A stretch of 64,000 bases of DNA, taken from assembly GCA_001179505.1 (NCBI GenBank), contig CDMY01000483.1, positions 4,099 to 68,098 of the forward strand. The letters run 5' to 3'. Source of the DNA: Vitrella brassicaformis CCMP3155. Its lineage: Eukaryota > Protista > Chromerida. Positions 1-18,338 of this stretch are shown here, piece by piece. Each line of letters begins with the position of its first letter. Position 1 is the first letter of the stretch. The notes under the pieces were generated by a model. It made no database searches and was not told the DNA's origin. It saw nothing but the letters and a program-made list of their open reading frames with translations. The translations under genes were made by a program, and so were the position numbers.

Positions 1-163
1 GAGATGACGAGAGCAGCAGCCATCGACACAGACAAAGACGGACGAGACAGCTTCAAGACTTCCCAACTGCGAGCCAACGATGGGGGCTTGTGTGGGGTCA
101 TGCATTGTGGTGTGCTGTTGTTGTGGTGGCAGGTCCTTGTGTTGTTAGTGTTTATCGCACCCC

Positions 164-2434
164 TTGTCCTGTCGCCATGCCGGGCAGCGCCGAACTGCTG
201 CTGGAGCACCTCAGGCAGCAGTGTGGCCCAGTCGGCATCTCCTGGCAGGACAGGTCACATCAAAACAGGCGGAGCCCAAGGTCGATAGCCATGATTTGAC
301 GAATTCCCAGTCCCCGCCCCTCGCCAGCAAGGAACGAGCCAGACACATCTCACAAGTACGGATGCACACACACCACACACACCACAGACCCGCATGCTCA
401 CATGACGGTTCGTTCTTTTGTATGCGTCACACCGAGGTTGACCAGGGGAGTACAGTAGCAAGGCCTGAGGGGAATCTAATGAGACTTCAGGTTCCCACCA
501 AGCACTTACACACACATACATACATATACAGACGCGTCCTCTGTGTATGTTCTCAGTCCGACAGCTGCATTTCCCATATGGAGGAGGAACTTATGGAGCA
601 GCGAAGGAGGAAAGAGGAGGAAATCAACAAGAGGATATTCGAAGCACAACAAGAATCTCAGCGACATTTATGTGCATATTCTTGGTGGGCTCCGGCAGGG
701 GTCGTGCCCGCGGGGGACACATGGGGCGAGATGCTCGACGCGCTCCGCAAGGCCATCGACAACCGCAACAAGCTGGCGGAGAGCCTCAGGATCCCCAGCC
801 GAGTGGATGCGGCGGCCCCGACAAGAGAGGGAGAGCGGAGAGAAGGGCGACACCGCCGCAGTTGCCAGAGCGGCCGACGAAAGAGCCGGTGAGCTAAAGC
901 ACGTGATGTGGTGAGGGTATTCCATTCATGTGTCTGTGCTGTGGTGATATGTCTCTGGCTTTTCAACCAGCAGACGAGCCCGTCAAGGTCACTGAGGAGA
1001 GATGCGCGGGGGCATCTGACTGTCTCTCTGTGGCGTGTGTGTTCAGGTAGACGCCGACCCCCGGTTCCAACGAGGACAGAAGAATGTATAGTGAATGCAC
1101 AGCACAGGATAACACAACACGACACAGACACACACCCCATCTCTCTCACGGGTATGCTTTGTGTGGGCTGCGCCAACAGGAGTTTCACTATTTGGGCCAC
1201 TAATCGCATGAAGATCGACCTCGATTTCTACAGACGCAGCACAGAAGAGCTTGAGACGAAAGTCGCCAGATTAGATCTGGACAAGGTACGCATGGATGGG
1301 GACGGCCACACTAATAAATTTATCTTACCGCTCTGCAGGAAAAACTGCAAGATGACATAAGACGACAAGAGGTCCGACACCACAAAGATATCCACGAACT
1401 CAAGGTAGTTGAAATTCAGGCACATGAGGACGTTCCAGCTACTGCTGTGCGATATCCTGATGCATCCACCTCACAGGACGGCTGTCTTTGAAGGACATCG
1501 ATGGAGGCAACCGAAAAAGAAAACCCCCATACGAAAGGTAAGTTGGAGACGGAGGAGAAGAGCGGCAGGCATGTGGAGCGTGACTTTCTCTGTGTCAGAC
1601 CTGCACGAGGCCATGGTCGAAGTCGACCTGCGCGACGAATTCCACCTTGATGAGGAGGTCGTCAAGGAGGAGAAGAACGAGGAAGGGGAGACGGCCGACG
1701 AGAGAGAGGAGGAGACGGCGAGCGAGGAGGAGGAGCACCAGCCGGCGGCAACAGAGGGCTGCCGAACGCCGCCCGCACCTCTGGTGACCCGGCGCAGCAC
1801 CTCCAGCGGCGCCCTGGTGCTCCAGCCGGAGGAGGACCCCGAGGAGAGGCTGCTGGCGGAGATGCTCGAGGTGACTAGGAGAGTCGGCCAGTTCATGCAG
1901 GAGGTGAGCTGCACCGTCAAGGCCACCGTCATGTTGAAAGCTTTTGACTTTCGATGGTGTCCTGGTGGCTTCTCAGTTTGCGGCCAAGGGCAAGACGTTC
2001 CGGGAGCGCCTGCAGAGGTTGCGCCACAACCACCTGAACCAGGCGACTGGGAGCCGCCTCAGGGTGGCTTCTCGGGACAAGAAGCCCTCTCTGCCGCCGG
2101 TGCCCGAGAAGACGCCCGGTATGCTAAGAGGGTGTGTGCAGGCAGCGTTGCGTCTTGCCATGAGTCATTCACTGTCTGCTTATGTGTGTCTCTCTCAGCG
2201 AAGAAGGAGACACTGTCCAAGCAGAAGATGCTGGACGGCAAGACCCCGCTCCCAGGACGGCGCCCACCCTTCCTCGTCGGCATCCCCCGCCGCCCCATTG
2301 ACGGAACATTCGGACCACCCCCGACAGTCACGCGGCCCAAGCCGCCCAAGCGGCCCGAGAAGAGATCAAGTACGTCCGATTACGACATCTGCAGATACAA
2401 ATCTCTTCACAAACGGTTTCTGCATGTCTGGTGA
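164..2434 (+). CDS. Multi-exon hypothetical protein with charged coiled-coil segments and a Pro/Lys-rich C-terminus; true 5' end may lie upstream
   Basis: Exon-like blocks joined by GT-AG introns: MEEELMEQRRRKEEEINKRIFEAQQ, KIDLDFYRRSTEELETKVARLDLDK, KLQDDIRRQEVRHHKDIHELK, DLHEAMVEVDLRDEF..., and a final exon KKETLSKQ...HKRFLHVW* ending at 2434. No family motif recognised. Confidence 0.55.
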
Positions 2435-2975
2435 TCAGAGAAAGCCCTTGACAAGGAACAACCCAAGACGGGCCACGTCTGATGCTGTGGAGGAGGGTTG
2501 AGTGGGGAGGGAGGGTGGGGGGGCTGTGTTGTTTCTGTCTGTGGTGGATTTCAGCCGTCCAGGGGGCGTGGCGTGTCTATGTGATGCGGTTCGAGGGTGT
2601 GAGGGTGGATGGATGGACGCGGAAGGCGGAGGGTCGCCGCATGGAGGGAGTGGCTGTAGTGTGGAGGAGGGGTGGGTGGGTGGGTGGCTTATGGGTTGTG
2701 CGGAGAGGGCGTGGATGCTGTGTGGTGTGCTGGTGTGGGGCCGTCTAGGGGGCGCGCCGCGCACCAGCACCGGTGCGGTGCGCGAACTCGCCTGATCGTT
2801 GTCTACATTTCATATCTTGCTGGGGTTTGACATCATCGCTTTCGCTTTCTCGGGGTCATGACATGGATGTGGACACTTGAAATGTCCGTGTCGCTACGTA
2901 GCGCGCTCGACAGAAAAACATTCATCTCACCCCAATGGTGTGTGAGGGTGCGCGTGTGCGGGCGATGATGATCAT

Positions 2976-5900
2976 CTATCGCACGATCTCCCCCTCCTGC
3001 TTCATGTGCTCCACCTCCCCGTTGCACTGTGGGCACCGCAGCGGCTCGCCCGTCTGCTTTGCCCGAGCACACCAGCCCTCCTTGCATGGGTTGCACAGGC
3101 AGATGTGCAGACAGGGGAAGAACCGCCACACGGCATAGGTATCGTCACCACACACCAGACACTTGGGCTGGCTGAGGTGGCGGGCGTGCTTGGTGGCGGC
3201 GGCGAAGATCTGAGCTAGGTTGGTCTGCTGCTGCGTCGCCATGGCCATGAAGGCGTCCAGCTCCTCGGTGCTCTGAGTCTCCAGCAACGCATCCACCGTC
3301 AGACTGACACGACAGACACCACGATTACAACACATGCACAGTGGGTGGGTGTGTGGGGCACTCGTTGCTGCTCACTTGGGTCGTTTCTTGAGCTCGTTCC
3401 TGAGTGCATCGATTTGCGTGACCTGTGCGGCGTAGCTGTCGCGCTCATCCTGACGACGCTGACACTCGTTTGCCAACCTGCACACACATGGCACGGAGGA
3501 CAGAGGGATGCTGTGGCGGGTGACCGATTCGAGTGTCCCTCTCATCCCTTTCCACTCACCGGTCGATCTTGGCCTGCATTTGCTCTACTTGCATGCGATG
3601 GACAGCCGCCTGCTGCTCCAGCTGGGCAGACACACTGCACACACCGCATCATAACATAATGAACACCGAGACATCTGTGAAAGTGGGTGGATNNNNNNNN
3701 NNNNNNNNNNNNNNNNNNNNNNNNNNNNNNNNNNNNNNNNNNNNNNNNNNNNNNNNNNNNNNNNNNNNNNNNNNNNNNNNNNNNNNNNNNNNNNNNNNNN
3801 NNNNNNNNNNNNNNNNNNNNNNNNNNNNNNNNNNNNNNNNNNNNNNNNNNNNNNNNNNNNNNNNNNNNNNNNNNNNNNNNNNNNNNNNNNNNNNNNNNNN
3901 NNNNNNNNNNNNNNNNNNNNNNNNNNNNNNNNNNNNNNNNNNNNNNNNNNNNNNNNNNNNNNNNNNNNNNNNNNNNNNNNNNNNNNNNNNNNTCCTGCTC
4001 GCGTATGTGCTGGCCGTGCACCGCCTCGAGAGATCGCAACCTGACAGTGGATGAAGAGGCAGACACAGATGAATGCATAGCCATCACAGATCTGCCTTAC
4101 TTGTCCTCCTGTGCGGCGAGTGCATCCCTGAGGGCCTCCTCAGCCACACTGGCGCGCTTCTCGCACTCCACCTCGGCCTCACGCAACCTGAATGTAATGA
4201 ACCCTCAGGCAGGCAAGAGAGAAATGGACAGCCAGCCATCCCATGCGCATTGCCCTGTGTGCTGCTCACCGCTTCTCCGCATCAAACGCCCTTTGCTCAG
4301 CAGCAGTAGCCAGCTGCCCCAACCTGCCCAAGAAGGCACAACACAACACAACACAACACAACACAGACACTTGTGTGTCAGCGGACCATTGCATGTATTG
4401 TGCAGCCGTACGTGTCGTTGTGTGCCCGGAGCTCGCCAACAACGCTGCAGACACGAAGAAGGAAGAACACAGACATGCAACAGGTGTTAGCGGATCCATC
4501 CATCCATCCATCCACACGCACCTGTTGAATACGCTGAGTGGTACGGTGTCCGGCGGGGGCTGCATGGCTGTCCCACCGTCGCTATGGCCGGCTCGTAGCG
4601 TCTCGTCATCGGTCGACAGCGATGGGCTTGGAAGCAGACCAGCCTGGGCTGTCGAGCGCACCTCGTCGGCGTCACACACACCAGCTGGCGGAGGAGCGGA
4701 CGACGAACAGGACGCCACACCGCCGGCTCCCTCGCTTCTGTGGTGCTCGTGGGTCGTCACCTGGACCGCCTTGGGAGGTGAGCGGTGCTCGTGCTGGTGA
4801 GTCGATGAGGGCGGCTTGACTGCACACGGGTCCTTGGTCAGGGGGCTGGCCTTCGTGCGCTTGGCAGGTGGTTTGTTGGGGTCCTCGCGGCGGGTGGTAG
4901 TGGTGGCGTTGGAGCTGAGGGCGGCGAAGGGGTTGTTGAGCAGACAGCTCTCCTCAGGAAGGTCATTATCGTCAGCAGCGGGCTCGGCATCGCTGGCCTC
5001 AGCCCCCTCCTGCCCCACCCCATCGCCACCCTCACGCCCACCGCTCCTGCCTTGGGTCTTGCCCTTGCTCTTGTTCCTGTGTTTCTTCTGGGTCCCTCCC
5101 TTGGCCTTGGCCGCCGCCTGTCGCATCTTCTTCGCCTTCTCCATGGCATCCTCTGCGATGAGTTGCCGCGCCATCGCCGCGGCCTCCTTGGTCCTCCTCC
5201 GCAGCGTCGCCGGGTCATCCTCTTGCTCCTGATGCTGCTGTTGGTGCTGGGTGGTGGGGGCCGAGCGCTTTTGGTGGCAGCTCTTGTTCTTGCTCGCTGC
5301 GGCAGAGCGGCCACTGGCAGACACCGATGGCCGGGACTCTGCTGGCAGGGAGAAATTGGCTCGAATCGAAGCCAGGATCGTGCTGGACCCGATGGCGAGC
5401 ACAGAAAGGATCAGGTCGCCAGATTTGAGGTTGCTGTCCTCGACGGTGTCGGCATCCTTGAGCTGCTCGTCGTCCTTGAAGAAAAGCATGTGCCCACGAG
5501 GGAGTAGCTTGGTGCCCGTCTCCTTCTGCAGCTTGCTCTTGACCGCCGCTATGGTGTCAGTGGCCGCGACCTCCAAAGTGTGGCGCTTCTCTGAACAGAC
5601 AACGGGCAGCGAGCACAAGGGCAAGCACACAAGCCACCTCACGAATGCATGCAATGCAGCCCTTTTGTCTCTTCTGGGCACTGCGGACCGGCGAAGTTGA
5701 TGCGGCTGTTCACGCCTAATAAGCTGAAGTTGAGCGTGATGCGCGGCATCTTAGCCACCACGTCGTCCCCACATGCCTTGAAGTGCTCACTGGCGGCTGA
5801 CGGTCCACTGGATCCGGCTGGGGCGCTGCGAGGACCAGACATCATGTTTGGTTGTGTCCTAGCCCCATTCCTCCCTCACTCCCTGTTTGTCTGTCTGTCT

Positions 5901-6745
5901 GTCTATCTGTCTACCTGTGTGTGTTGCCTGGCGCTGCAGTGGCCTTTTTGCTGCTGCTGCTGCTGCTGCTGCTTGCTCTACGTATGCACACATATGGAAG
6001 CATGAGGATATAGGTGTGGTGTGTACCTGGCTGACGGGGATGGGAACAGAGCTTGCAGGGGCGGTCGGCCGTCGTCACACTCGGAGATCCGGCTATCGGC
6101 ATCAAACAGCAGCACACACTCGTGCGGGTAGTCTGGTGGAGCCGGACCCAAAAGACTGCCACGCGATCCGATCCATGCCCCCGTGCCAGGCCAGGATATG
6201 GCATCGATATGTATGTTTGTAAGTGTGCGGTTCGCAAACGCGAACTCCGCCCTCAGCGCCTTGCCTCCTTCCATCCGATACAGCTGCACCACACCACACA
6301 CGTGACTGGTGAATGGCGTGGCGTGGCGTGGCTGTGCTGACCTTGCCCGGATGTCCTGCAAAGGTATTCGCCACAACTGCCGCGATTCGCTGATCCGTAT
6401 CTCGGTCTTCGATAATCCAGGTAGAATATTCATGACTCTGATACAGACTGGGGATCAATGAATGCACTGTGTGAGAGATCAGCGGCGCCTCCCTACTTAC
6501 TCCGCGACGACTCTCGCCATGATGGTCACGTCATCCGCACCGGGAATTATGTCGCAAATGCGAACCAGACAGCTGCACACACACCACAAAGAAACACACA
6601 CACACACACACATGCACCATGTTGCTGGGCGTGTGTTGGGCTGCCCTGCTTCTTTCTTCTAGCATGCAGCTCACCCATCATGTTGGTCATATGAGGATCT
6701 CCCGCCCGGGCCTCCATCAGGCGCTCCACCTGTCCGGCTGTCCAT
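2976..6745 (-). CDS. Predicted E3 ligase: RPA-like OB fold - poly-Ser - ubiquitin-like domain - low complexity - coiled coil - C3HC4 RING (spans an assembly gap)
   Basis: Phase-consistent GT-AG splicing from ATG 6745 (MDSRTGG...HDG|CLVRICDIIPGADDVTIMARVVA|DLYQ...) through MPRITLNFSLLGVNSRINFA|EKRHTLEVAATDTIAAVKSKLQKETG...LKDADTVEDSNLKSGDLILSVL (Ubl). Coiled-coil exons lie on both sides of the gap, followed by CLVC-x12-CLHICLCNPC-x16-CPQC (RING) and a stop at 2976. Confidence 0.75.
3693..3992. other. Assembly gap (300 N)
   Basis: Run of N; exactly 300, so likely a placeholder size. Confidence 1.
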
Positions 6746-7578
6746 GTCGGCGACTGATGGCGTTTCAACAGATCTCCGACCAGAGGCAGATCTGCGCGAT
6801 TCGCAGAATCCGCAACCGATGAACGGAAGAGAGAACTTGAAGAGGAAGGCCTTCGAAAGGAAGGTTTCTTCTTTCTTTTCCGTTTCTCCTTTTCCTTCGT
6901 TTCTATTCTCTTCGTTCGGCTACGACCGAAGTCGCCTCATCACACACATATCTGCAGGCAGGCAGGCAGACACACCGACACAGCACGGAATGAATGAACG
7001 AGTGGAATGGATGGCGTGTGCGGACCTAGCAGCGTCTTGTGTAAGTACGCTATGATCTTCCTGTCTGGCTTATGCTCATCTCCATGTATGTGTTAGTACC
7101 TGTTTGCTTGCGTGTGTCGATGCATTGCATGGCTGGTGTGCTGCAGTGTGGCAAAACGGGGGCCTGCATACCATCAGCACACACACACAGGTCGATTGCC
7201 TCTCCGCCTCTCCTTGTGAGTGATGTGTCGAGGTCTCTCCGCACCTGTGGATGGTGGTGTGACGCCCTTGACGCCCTTGCCGCCCTTGCCGCCCTTGTGG
7301 TGATGCCAGCTCGCAGATCGACATCGCCGCATTACCTCACTTGCCTGGAGGGTTTCCCGCCCCACTCCCCTTTCCCGAGGCGTGTCCCCTTGTGCAGTCG
7401 AAGCCGTCCGGGATCTGCCTTGGGATCTGCGAGCTTGGGTGGTGACTCATTCGAAACGGTCAGTGCGAGCTCGAGCGCGCGACTCCGAGATCTCGGAGTG
7501 TGTCTTCCCTCTGTGTTTGTTTGACGGCGTGCAGACCTCAGCCTGTTTGCCTGCAGCAGTTGCGCGATATCTGCGTCG

Positions 7579-17249: not shown

Positions 17250-18338
17250 TCGACTGATTAGCGGTGCAAGCGGTCTTTTTCTGTCGTCTTGTGTGTGGGG
17301 CTGTGGGAAGGGGTGGAGGGAGGGAGGGAGGGAGGGGAAAGGGCGTACGTAGCCGGGTAGAAGGGTATGGGCAGTATCTCGCCTTTGTCTGTGGCTGTGT
17401 GTGGAGGCATCCTCAGGTTTTAAGAGGCTTGCTCCCATACCTTGGCAGAGGCAACACAGACAGAGACGTCGACAGACAGACAGACAGACAGACAAGAGTG
17501 TCATTTTGTATCCATCCCTGCAAGCGTGCCGGTGTGGCCGCGTGGGTGTGTGTCGTGTGTCGTGTGTCGCTTATCGTGTTCCAGAGCCCCTCTGCCCCCC
17601 AGACAGACAGACAGACAGACAGACACACACTACAGAAAGGCAGCAGCGACATTGTCGATCGGTGGTCCCCTTCGTACGCCCTCGTGGCTATATACCATAA
17701 CACTACATATACATTACTTACATCCAGTGCGACTCATTTAAGCGAGCGCATGACCACTCACTCAGTCACTCAGTCACTCAGCCGATGAGATCATTAGTGC
17801 CTTTCTGCCTTCCTCCCTCCCTCCCTGGCTGAACGATCTGCTAGAGTCATTTTTCTCTCGGTGGTGTGGTGTGGTTGGTGTGGTGTGGTGGGCGATTGGC
17901 CAGCTGAGTGGCGTGATTGATCAATCGAGTAGCCTGCATCGACCGACCTGCCGAGGGGCGACTGAGTGGGTGAGTGAGTGAGTAGTAGAGAGGGAGACGG
18001 GGCGGTGTGCTGTGTGTCGCTGGCCGCCCTTTTTTGGGAGATGTTTTGTTGCGCTGTGTTGTGTTGTGTTGTGTTGTGGCTGTGGCTGACGGGAGAGGCC
18101 GGGCCGTGTGTAAGCAAAGAAAATGGTTGTCAATTCGACAGGGTGTCGTGTGGTTTGGTGTGTGTCCGTGAGGGTGCCAATGCGCTGCGTGGGTGACTGT
18201 ATGGCAATATCGCATACACGATCACACACATCAGGCGTCCATCCATCCATCCACTTACTCACTCACTCACTCAGAATCACGGACGGACGAGCAACGGAGG
18301 GAGGGAGGGAGGGAGGGAGGGAGGCATGCACCAGACAG

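Follow-up and report, generated by a model that had tools for sequence, protein, structure and literature searches.

Gene structure and transcript support

The DNA analyzed here is from Vitrella brassicaformis CCMP3155, and the window is a stretch of 64,000 nt (GCA_001179505.1, contig CDMY01000483.1, positions 4,099-68,098 of the forward strand). A multi-exon gene lies on its minus strand and runs from an ATG at 6745 to a stop at 2976, with GT-AG at every boundary and compatible phases throughout, and the predicted protein has approximately 882 amino acids. The gene is expressed, as RNA contigs from two runs, X4 and X5, match its exons. Seven introns were found directly in the spliced RNA contigs of these runs (6448-6500, 6284-6341, 5591-5688, 4188-4269, 4041-4100, 3478-3559, and 3304-3375). 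For an eighth, at the junction between exons 1 and 2, depth arithmetic placed the last 36 letters of X4 record 12 on 6675-6710.

Exon 1 (6675-6745, 71 nt) starts with the ATG at 6745, encodes a Gly/Asp-rich N-terminal tail of 24 amino acids, and has a GT donor at 6674 and the support of X4 record 12. Exon 2 (6501-6572) and exon 3 (6342-6447), connected by the RNA joint 6447>6501, encode the predicted β1 (CLVRICDIIPGADDVTIMARVVA) and β2-β3 of an OB-like domain, respectively. Exon 3 is connected to exon 4 by the joint 6283>6342 and aligns with repeats A, B, and C of a paralog described below. Exon 4 (6027-6283) encodes the putative β4, an insert of 29 amino acids (6155-6241), the putative β5 with an ...ISECDD motif, and the start of a linker, and X4 record 12 is unspliced over 6057-6283. 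The sequence-only reading, whose start, stop, GT-AG boundaries, and phases are confirmed here, had drawn a single intron at 6026-5826 after this exon, and the RNA refutes that intron. A 63-nt exon, missed earlier, lies inside it (exon 4b, 5915-5977): X4 record 11 contributes 62 loose letters, which correspond to 5918-5977 and are spliced to 5825. This exon consists of (CAG)n, encodes a poly-Ser linker, and resembles the homologous end of the paralog exon pL1.

Exon 5 (5689-5825) encodes further linker and the first strand of a ubiquitin-like domain (Ubl), and is covered by X4 record 11 over 5689-5828. Its joint with exon 6 (5590>5689) is present in both X4 and X5, which sets the corrected borders at 5689 for the end of exon 5 and 5590 for the start of exon 6. 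A donor at 5714, giving ...SLLGKRHTLEV, was ruled out by the RNA. Exon 6 (4522-5590) contains the Ubl (approximately 5400-5590) followed by an Ala/Ser/Pro-rich linker of about 280 amino acids, and RNA contigs extend over 4525-5590. The middle part of this linker is homologous to the paralog.

Next comes the coiled coil, encoded by exons 7-9, 11, and 12. Exon 7 (4412-4444, 33 nt), at the start of the coiled coil, agrees in size with the lengths that X4 record 10 allows, and its joints lie within masked repeats. Exon 8 (4270-4323, 54 nt) is connected to exon 9 (4101-4187, 87 nt) by the RNA joint 4185>4268 (cut +2, 54-letter side); exon 9 has a further joint at 4038>4099 and shares 82% amino acid identity with the paralog. 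Of exon 10 (3993-4040), 48 nt are visible, and it extends into an assembly gap, where RNA and DNA contigs alike read on past 3993 with GTTCACCAT... The counterpart of exon 10 in the paralog is 63 nt long. Exon 11 (3560-3636; 96% amino acid identity with the paralog) is covered by X4 record 9 up to 3636, and its true acceptor is probably at 3634. It is joined to exon 12 (3376-3477) by 3475>3558, and exon 12 to exon 13 by 3303>3376. Exon 13 (2976-3303) encodes a helix and a C3HC4 RING (3006-3170) and ends with the stop codon TAG at 2976-2978. When we calculated GC3, exons 1-4 gave 0.46-0.65, which is below the values of exons 6 and 13 (0.77-0.85).

The assembly gap at 3693-3992, unseen in the sequence-only reading, has a true length of about 320 bp, of which about 145 nt are coding. 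Record 2 of the X3 DNA contigs spans it and supplies 320 letters; among the RNA contigs, X4 record 9 leads from 3636 to 3993 and inserts approximately 145 letters. At the corresponding place in the paralog, the genomic stretch measures 305 letters and the mRNA stretch 130, so that both lengths differ by +15 in the gene studied. Judging from the paralog, exon 10 would continue for 15 nt into the gap and be followed there by two further exons, of 63+15 nt and 54 nt. Taken as 1 + 144, the 145 letters lead toward the RING exon in the one frame that is open, and the gene is continuous and in frame across the gap.

Searches for relatives of the protein gave little. A full HMMER search with exon 4 detected no relative among 1.84 billion representatives, including the proteins of the Vitrella genome; since even Vitrella proteins gave no match, the spliced product has no stored protein id. 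Word searches with exon 4, with exon 6, and with its first 150 amino acids returned zero matches, and none was found among the metagenome loci searched.

Domain architecture

The C-terminal RING matches PF13920 in residues 45-99 of exon 13 with 28.5 bits (cut-off 27), and the translation contains all eight zinc ligands in cross-brace spacing (C-x2-C-x12-C-x-H-x3-C-x2-C-x16-C-x2-C), confirming the zf-C3HC4_3-type RING of the sequence-only reading. Against the PDB, the RING exon showed weak matches to the RINGs of AMFR, XIAP, and CGRRF1 (E 0.02-0.1). Its single-sequence AlphaFold2 model had a pLDDT of 54, too poor to display a fold. The Ubl, also proposed earlier, matches PF00240 with 30.7 bits (cut-off 25.4, E 2.7e-7) and, in phmmer, residues 13-71 of ubiquitin (E 3e-4 for mono-ubiquitin). 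For the Ubl exon, the single-sequence AlphaFold2 model had a pLDDT of 59 and Foldseek returned noise only. After the last strand the sequence continues ...LSVLAIGSSTIL, and a C-terminal Gly-Gly for conjugation is absent; since there is no such Gly-Gly, the Ubl is predicted to be an integral domain and not a modifier.

From the N- to the C-terminus, the order towards which we lean is a Gly/Asp-rich tail, a block resembling DNA-binding domain A (DBD-A) of RPA70, a Ser-rich linker, the Ubl, the low-complexity linker of about 280 amino acids, a coiled coil of about 230 amino acids, and the RING at the C-terminus. The analysis thus supports the one-gene architecture read earlier from the letters. 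No description of an OB, Ubl, coiled coil, and RING combination was found in the literature searched.

A paralog with three tandem repeats

The family has two members in the Vitrella genome. The paralog, located on contig C494, carries the N-terminal block three times in tandem, ahead of the same coiled coil and RING, and it contains no Ubl; the OB-like domain is therefore present in four copies in the genome, one in the window gene and three in the paralog. While the RING exons of the two genes are 96% identical, the repeat copies are mutually only 24-48% identical. The 29-amino-acid insert of exon 4 sits where the paralog repeats have an intron. In this relative of the apicomplexan parasites, the gene pair is a record of domain shuffling: one copy has a Ubl where the other has two putative OB folds, an intron has been exonised within the loop of a domain, and the 3′ end has undergone gene conversion.

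Similarity of the N-terminal block to RPA70 DBD-A

The N-terminal block is probably homologous to RPA70 DBD-A, and we consider an OB fold equally likely for it. When profiles of the four copies were searched against 177,635 PDB sequences, the three best matches of the β1-exon profile (A3) were archaeal Replication factor A (8aa9, 8aaj, and 8aas), on the OB-opening motif. The last strand of yeast RFA1 DBD-A (1ynx, residues 87-114) was matched by the β5 profile at rank 3 and by the paralog exon pC4 at rank 1; the PDB matches of the β1 and β5 profiles had E-values of 0.12-0.3. The two best non-self matches of a local HMM of the four repeats lie in two RPA1-like genes of Vitrella, in each case in the exon that adjoins the REPA_OB_2 match on its 5′ side, at the DBD-A end (E 0.012 and 0.064). 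Altogether the RPA matches of the block are weak, with E-values from 0.01 to 1. The β2-β3 profile had zero matches in the PDB, to RPA or otherwise.

The DBD-A pattern noticed in the sequence-only reading was thus recovered with the four-copy profiles, which put RPA first in the PDB and reach RPA1-like genes of Vitrella, and not with single exons of the window gene. Exons 2, 3, and 4, searched singly against the PDB, gave chance matches only, such as ribosomal S11 on the 29-amino-acid insert. Exon by exon, Pfam detected no OB family in the window gene or in the OB exons of the paralog, and none in the N-terminal extension of the paralog. Genome scans with PF01336 and PF16900 left the locus untouched; PF04057 (Rep-A_N) found nothing in the Vitrella genome, and the control genomes were likewise silent. 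ESM Atlas features of exon 4 scored below 0.9 only and had no family in common. Two MAFFT alignments of short exon fragments (A2 and A4) were misaligned and were discarded.

Proposed function and alternative explanations

The combination of domains suggests a candidate ubiquitin ligase aimed at single-stranded DNA (ssDNA), and its OB-like domain may bind ssDNA, a possibility to which we give slightly less than even weight. It may act in DNA damage or replication stress, as the sequence-only reading proposed. In such a ligase, the OB domains would keep the protein on single-stranded nucleic acid, most likely ssDNA, and the coiled coil would dimerise the protein, bringing two RINGs and two OB domains into joint action. 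The RING would recruit a charged E2, by which nearby proteins would be ubiquitinated. A ubiquitin receptor could serve as a docking partner of the Ubl, or the Ubl could regulate the RING.

Here, we need to consider that the architecture may be as described while the OB-like domain is a fast-evolving recognition module for protein, RNA, or another ligand and has no role in replication stress. Binding to partners of these kinds is known for RPA70N and many other OB folds, and the identity among the repeats is far below that of the RING exon. In addition, the family comprises two genes in the Vitrella genome, and for exon 4 the search above gave no relative elsewhere. The candidate base-stacking aromatics point in two directions. 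F238 and F269 of human DBD-A stack on bases; in the alignment of the four repeats, read by eye, an S/T-F motif with Phe at the end of β3 is kept in three of the four, which speaks for ssDNA, whereas the second aromatic is not conserved across them. Against a module for other ligands, the best matches of the block are to the DNA-binding domain A of RPA and not to its protein-binding N-terminal domain, and the paralog carries its three repeats in tandem, like the DNA-binding core of RPA70. On balance, we regard a module for other ligands as rather unlikely.

It is improbable that the block is not an OB fold at all but some other small β domain, with RPA matches that arose by chance on short motifs (I-x-D-I-x-P-G and a closing C-x-D-D). 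Such a reading would account for E-values that all exceed 0.01, for the exon-by-exon absence of Pfam OB families in both genes, and for a language-model search without a lead. However, the β1 and β5 exons, which are independent, match RPA large subunits at the corresponding ends of the OB fold, and these matches come from three sources, namely archaeal RPA, yeast RFA1, and the RPA1-like genes of Vitrella, although RPA chains form a very small share of the 177,635 PDB sequences. The domain size of about 105-135 amino acids and the tandem repetition also fit an OB fold.

The last consideration concerns the splice that would fuse the OB-like and Ubl parts into one protein. Across 6040-5680, the RNA contains the joints from the 5977-5915 exon to 5825 and 5590>5689 and leaves 6026-5978 uncovered; the splice from exon 4 to 5977 is the sole junction between the OB part and the rest that has no RNA contig in X4 or X5, and 5870-5981 is masked as a repeat. 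An intron of 49 nt at 5978-6026 (minus strand) is nevertheless very likely, judging from its GTACAC...GTAG ends, the phase that it keeps, its intron-like composition (C-rich and then G/T-rich), and the junction in the paralog. There, splicing from the homologous donor CAG|GTACAC joins OB-A in phase to an exon of 297 nt, which is open solely in that phase and whose end resembles exon 4b, and OB-C is spliced in phase directly into the linker, coiled coil, and RING.

Two genes or transcripts, with a small OB protein ending at the TAG at 5978-5980 and a separate Ubl/coiled-coil/RING protein starting from an ATG in exon 5 (MPRITLNF...) after exon 4b as 5′ UTR, are the least probable arrangement, because the 6056-5978 hole that zero RNA contigs cross (X4 record 12 reaches 6057, and record 11 extends about 2 nt beyond 5977 on the upstream side) falls on the masked region and is hence no evidence, the in-frame Met about 14 residues ahead of the Ubl is preceded by about 50 codons that are open in frame, the climb of RNA contig depth toward the 3′ end is inflated by k-mers common to the gene and its paralog, the stop codon of the first transcript would have to be the start point of the second, the 49 nt with GT...AG ends keep the phase and resemble the introns of the Vitrella genome, and the counterpart exon in the paralog is coding and open only in the frame set by its OB exon. 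The lower GC3 of exons 1-4 compared with exons 6 and 13 counts against the one-gene explanation, which we retain.

Comparison with known systems

RFWD3, PRP19, and RAD18 reach ssDNA-coated structures via RPA or other adaptors, and HLTF uses its HIRAN domain, an OB-related module that reads ssDNA 3′ ends within a RING ligase. For Vitrella, we tentatively propose a ligase family built from copies of the RPA70 DNA-binding core, one member with a single OB and a Ubl and the other with three tandem OBs, sharing an almost identical coiled coil and RING and sensing ssDNA directly and not via RPA. The finding so far covers one alga, from sequence and RNA contigs. If the proposal is true, a RING ligase that itself contains RPA-type OB folds would differ from the adaptor-based solutions and be simpler, and it would serve as a compact reagent for studying how direct ssDNA reading is coupled to ubiquitination. 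The two paralogs, one with a Ubl where the other has two more OBs, would then offer a natural experiment on the tuning of such a ligase.

Compared with RPA70/RFA1 DBD-A (PF01336, OB clan), the block shows the same opening (V-R-I-x-D-I-x-P-G...A-R-V), a v-Y-x-f-x-x-G strand, the same closing (H-x-y-x-l-x-f-x-x-x-S-x-I-x-E-C-x-D-D-x-x-I-P), a length of about 110 amino acids, and, in the paralog, tandem repeats. It differs in the 29-amino-acid insert between the putative β4 and β5. Furthermore, the Vitrella protein has no Pfam match to the family, no DBD-C zinc ribbon, and no trimerisation helix, but a coiled coil and a RING instead.

Like HLTF/Rad5, the Vitrella protein would be a RING ligase with a built-in DNA reader. 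The Vitrella RING, however, is C-terminal and of the PF13920 type, and it shares its chain with a Ubl and a long coiled coil and not with a SNF2 motor; the HIRAN and SNF2 Pfam families were found in no exon, and an ATPase would not fit into the gene. UHRF1 likewise combines a ubiquitin-like domain and a nucleic-acid reader in one RING ligase, but its order is Ubl and then reader, while the Vitrella order is reader and then Ubl, and the putative reader is OB-like and not SRA. The SRA (YDG), tandem Tudor, and PHD Pfam families were found in no exon. With the C-terminal RINGs (PF13920) of XIAP, cIAP, and CGRRF1, the Vitrella RING shares the ligand spacing and the C-terminal position, although the similarity is weak in the PDB search given above and the protein has no BIR domains.

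Finally, RFWD3 and PRP19 are E3 ligases that are recruited to ssDNA through RPA. The site of action that we propose is the same, namely protein ubiquitination on RPA-type ssDNA platforms (reviews PMC8210275 and PMC8869861). While RFWD3 and PRP19 bind RPA as a partner, in Vitrella the putatively RPA-derived domain would belong to the ligase chain itself.

Exon chain and transcript evidence

Vitrella brassicaformis is a free-living chromerid alga related to Apicomplexa. The exon chain of the window gene was modelled with scripts from the minus strand of positions 7100-2700, which gave GT-AG at every exon boundary and compatible phases throughout, and contigs of four sequencing runs (X3, X4, X5 and X6) were mapped onto positions 2800-6950. 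In this placement X3 and X6 behaved like DNA, and X4 and X5 were taken as RNA because their contigs show joints with CT..AC ends, equivalent to GT..AG on the minus strand. Direct RNA joints in X4 and X5 contigs cross the minus-strand introns at 6448-6500, 6284-6341, 5591-5688, 4188-4269, 4041-4100, 3478-3559 and 3304-3375. X4 record 12, a contig of 441 nt, spans 6057-6283, 6342-6447 and 6501-6572, and its final 36 letters fall on 6675-6710 by the bin depth figures; coverage and depth together therefore join the four 5' exons, as the sequence-only reading had joined them. By the RNA contigs, exon 5 runs to 5689 and exon 6 begins at 5590, which refutes our first choice of donor, a neater site at 5714. 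In X4 record 11, 5075-5590 is followed by 5689-5828 and then by 62 letters matching 5918-5977, so that a 63-nt exon (exon 4b, 5977-5915), spliced to 5825, lies within 6026-5826. Thus the multi-exon, in-phase GT-AG chain of the sequence-only reading stood, with this exon added to it.

Exon 4b is a (CAG)n run coding for poly-Ser. Microsatellites occur in and around the gene at 5947-5973, 4488-4524, 4330-4371 and 6580-6612, of which the (CAG)n run is coding and the (GGAT)n, (GTTGT)n and (GT)n runs are intronic. At 6861-6950 the contig depth of the DNA runs rises about 20-fold (X6: 2,093 against ~90), and many contigs of all four runs stop there with differing loose ends. A high-copy repeat seems to have its edge here, a short way upstream of the 5' end of the gene.

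The assembly gap at 3693-3992 is bridged by contigs of both kinds. X3 record 2 (DNA, 1,093 nt) covers 2973-3692 and 3993-4045 with 320 letters in between, and X4 record 9 (RNA, 463 nt) lies on 3202-3303, 3376-3475 and 3558-3636 and, with 37 letters, from 3993, with 145 letters in between; depth bins confirmed that 3 letters fall at one edge of the gap and 37 at the other. The 1,997 coding letters upstream of the gap plus 145 make a multiple of three, and the codon then starting at 3636 opens the sole stop-free frame into the RING. The gap flanks are continuous and in frame. The protein has about 882 amino acids.

A collinear paralog

One X4 contig has a loose end at 4190 that is foreign to the window and maps to 17408-17433 of C494, a contig of the Vitrella assembly (G000), near the sole weak genome match of exon 4. 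When we compared C494:11000-27000 with the window gene exon by exon, C494:16071-21551 (loci L005 and L006, minus strand) proved to be a collinear paralog. Amino acid identity is 52% in exon 2 and 34% in exon 4 of the OB-like block, 40-48% in the exon 6 linker, 82-96% in the coiled-coil exons 9, 10 (visible part), 11 and 12, and 96% in the RING exon. At the nucleotide level, window 2973-3692 and C494:16065-16780 are 95% identical over 722 nt, introns included. This suggests either gene conversion at the 3' end or rapid divergence of the 5' end. Between points equivalent to the gap edges, the paralog, which contains no N, has 305 genomic and 130 mRNA letters, and the window gene is longer by 15 in both counts. 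The coding letters of the paralog here are the final 15 nt of one 63-nt exon, the whole of another 63-nt exon and a 54-nt exon.

The modelled paralog, with every junction GT-AG and in phase, encodes an 88-aa N-terminal extension, OB-like repeat A, a 143-aa Ser/Thr-rich linker, repeats B and C, a linker, a coiled coil and a RING. It lacks the Ubl, and two extra OB-like repeats stand at that position. Repeat C splices straight into a linker homologous to the middle of window exon 6; the OB-like/RING fusion is therefore not unique to the window gene. A last-strand profile of the four OB-like copies matched these four only in the genome search.

Nothing in the first 12 kb of the window corresponds to the 88-aa extension (C494:21052-21551, L006; MAASPSLVHGTVKAMLEG...), which also lacks a Pfam match and by eye faintly resembles the RPA70 N-terminal domain. 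In the paralog linker exon (L005, C494 ~17880-17900), the reading frame moves by 1 nt at the A-run CACCAAAAAGACC when compared with the conserved peptide ...SPLLNNPFAAL further downstream, a change that is either a homopolymer assembly error or a disabling shift. X5 RNA contigs show base differences at window 3066-3092 and 3414-3426 that probably come from the paralog, which would mean that the paralog is expressed. Over window 2939-4329, RNA contig depth is ~124 in exons 11-13 and drops in the 5' direction to 26, 12.7 and then 5.6. The overlap between X4 contigs 9 and 10 is exactly 30 letters long (4000-4029) and adjoins a one-base paralog difference at 4030, and the high 3' depth is therefore attributed largely to k-mers common to both genes.

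Probable relationship of the N-terminal block to RPA70

The OB-like domain is divided among three exons, exon 2 (beta1), exon 3 (beta2-beta3) and exon 4 (beta4-beta5). Searched singly, these exons matched nothing in Pfam, PDB, the word search, a full search of 1.84 billion representatives, the metagenome loci or the Atlas, and no relative of exon 4 was found outside the Vitrella genome. Profiles were then built exon by exon from the four repeat copies, one from the window gene and three from the paralog. First, the top three PDB matches of the beta1-exon profile (A3) were all Replication factor A (8aa9, 8aaj and 8aas, E 0.25-1), aligned on MRISELYPGMDPREVNVVGRVL, a motif opening an OB domain. 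Second, yeast RFA1 DBD-A (1ynx, residues 87-111) was the third PDB match of the beta5 profile (A1; E 0.3), and the paralog exon pC4 alone had 1ynx residues 88-114 as its top PDB match (E 0.12), with NILELPHPYVLVLGSDMIVEECPDDPN aligned against QFTNLTHPYELNLDRDTVIEECFDESN. The beta2-beta3 profile had no PDB match. Third, REPA_OB_2 (RPA70 DBD-B) matches were located at C358:46133-46282, C260:50470-50754, C465:48870-48971 and C282:74342-74497; these matches, at no fewer than four separate loci, suggest several RPA1-like genes in Vitrella. A four-repeat HMM was run by local hmmsearch against six-frame pieces of these loci and the whole window, and its best non-self matches were C282:74738-74818 (E 0.012) and C358:46530-46718 (E 0.064), the next having E 1.3. 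In both cases the DBD-B match follows on the same strand about 250 nt further 3', which puts the HMM match at the end of DBD-A.

The single E-values are weak; chance is nevertheless very unlikely, because independent exons and three independent sources point to matching domain ends. Based on these observations, we suggest that the N-terminal block is likely to be homologous to RPA70 DBD-A. The DBD-A pattern noticed in the sequence-only reading, which could not be known from the window alone, thus gains support from the exon-profile and HMM matches. In the alignment, judged by eye, three of the four repeats have a Phe where beta3 ends, and no conservation was seen for the second stacking aromatic of DBD-A. 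GC3 is lower in the OB exons than in the remainder of the gene.

Exon 4 also carries 29 extra residues (AFANRTLTNIHIDAISWPGTGAWIGSRGS; window 6155-6241) between beta4 and beta5. An intron occupies this position in each of the three paralog repeats and the RNA contig retains the insert, which is therefore probably an intron that became exonic in the loop between beta4 and beta5. Weak PDB matches to ribosomal protein S11 fall within the insert.

Ubl, coiled coil and RING

At its 5' end, exon 6 scored 30.7 bits against PF00240 (cut-off 25.4) and matched ubiquitin itself (residues 13-71) in phmmer, and the first strand of the domain is encoded by exon 5. Its translation has no Gly-Gly tail, indicating an integral Ubl. 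Exon 13 scored 28.5 bits against PF13920 (cut-off 27) with all eight ligands present, and had weak PDB matches to the RINGs of AMFR, XIAP and CGRRF1. Both domains had been named in the sequence-only reading and were recovered here. From exon 7 to the beginning of exon 13 the protein sequence is rich in Ala, Glu, Leu, Arg and Gln, contains hardly any Pro or Gly and has heptad-like spacing; by inspection it appears to form a coiled coil. AlphaFold2 models of single exons were poor (pLDDT 54 for the RING exon and 59 for the Ubl exon), and Foldseek with the Ubl exon model returned noise only.

Probable joining of the OB and Ubl parts

Across 6040-5680, RNA contigs contain the 5689>5590 and 5915>5825 splices. 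The splice from exon 4 (end 6027) to exon 4b (start 5977) is in no RNA contig placed on 2800-6950, where 5870-5981 is repeat-masked; X4 record 12 ends at 6057 and record 11 about 2 letters upstream of 5977. We infer a 49-nt intron at 6026-5978 from several features. It has GT...AG ends and phase 2 on either side, and exon 4b has 63 nt, so the phase is preserved. The intron is C-rich in the 5' half and G/T-rich in the 3' half, a likeness to the introns of the genome that was only partly borne out. About 50 open codons precede the first in-frame Met of exon 5. Above all, the paralog has the identical donor CAG|GTACAC, leading to a 297-nt exon open only in the frame of the OB exon, and the exon ends are alike (...SSSS..GNTY|gtag in the paralog and ...SSSS..GNTH|gtag in the window gene). 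Taken together, these features make it very likely that the OB and Ubl parts belong to one gene.

Comparison with known ubiquitin ligases

The sequence and RNA contigs confirm the observation of an RPA-like OB, a Ubl and a RING in one gene, with corrections, and partly support its interpretation, the OB-Ubl splice being deduced rather than read in a contig. We file the gene as a candidate RING E3 that carries its own putative RPA-derived OB module, and its protein might bind ssDNA and act as a ligase. Full-text literature searches found no description of an OB + RING or OB + Ubl + RING ligase, which does not in itself prove absence. The predicted protein is unlike RFWD3 and PRP19, whose access to ssDNA is through RPA binding. 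It follows the same logic as HLTF, which combines HIRAN with a RING, and as UHRF1, which combines a Ubl, a reader and a RING, but it has neither the HIRAN or SNF2 of the former nor the SRA, Tudor or PHD of the latter, and is thus a member of neither family.
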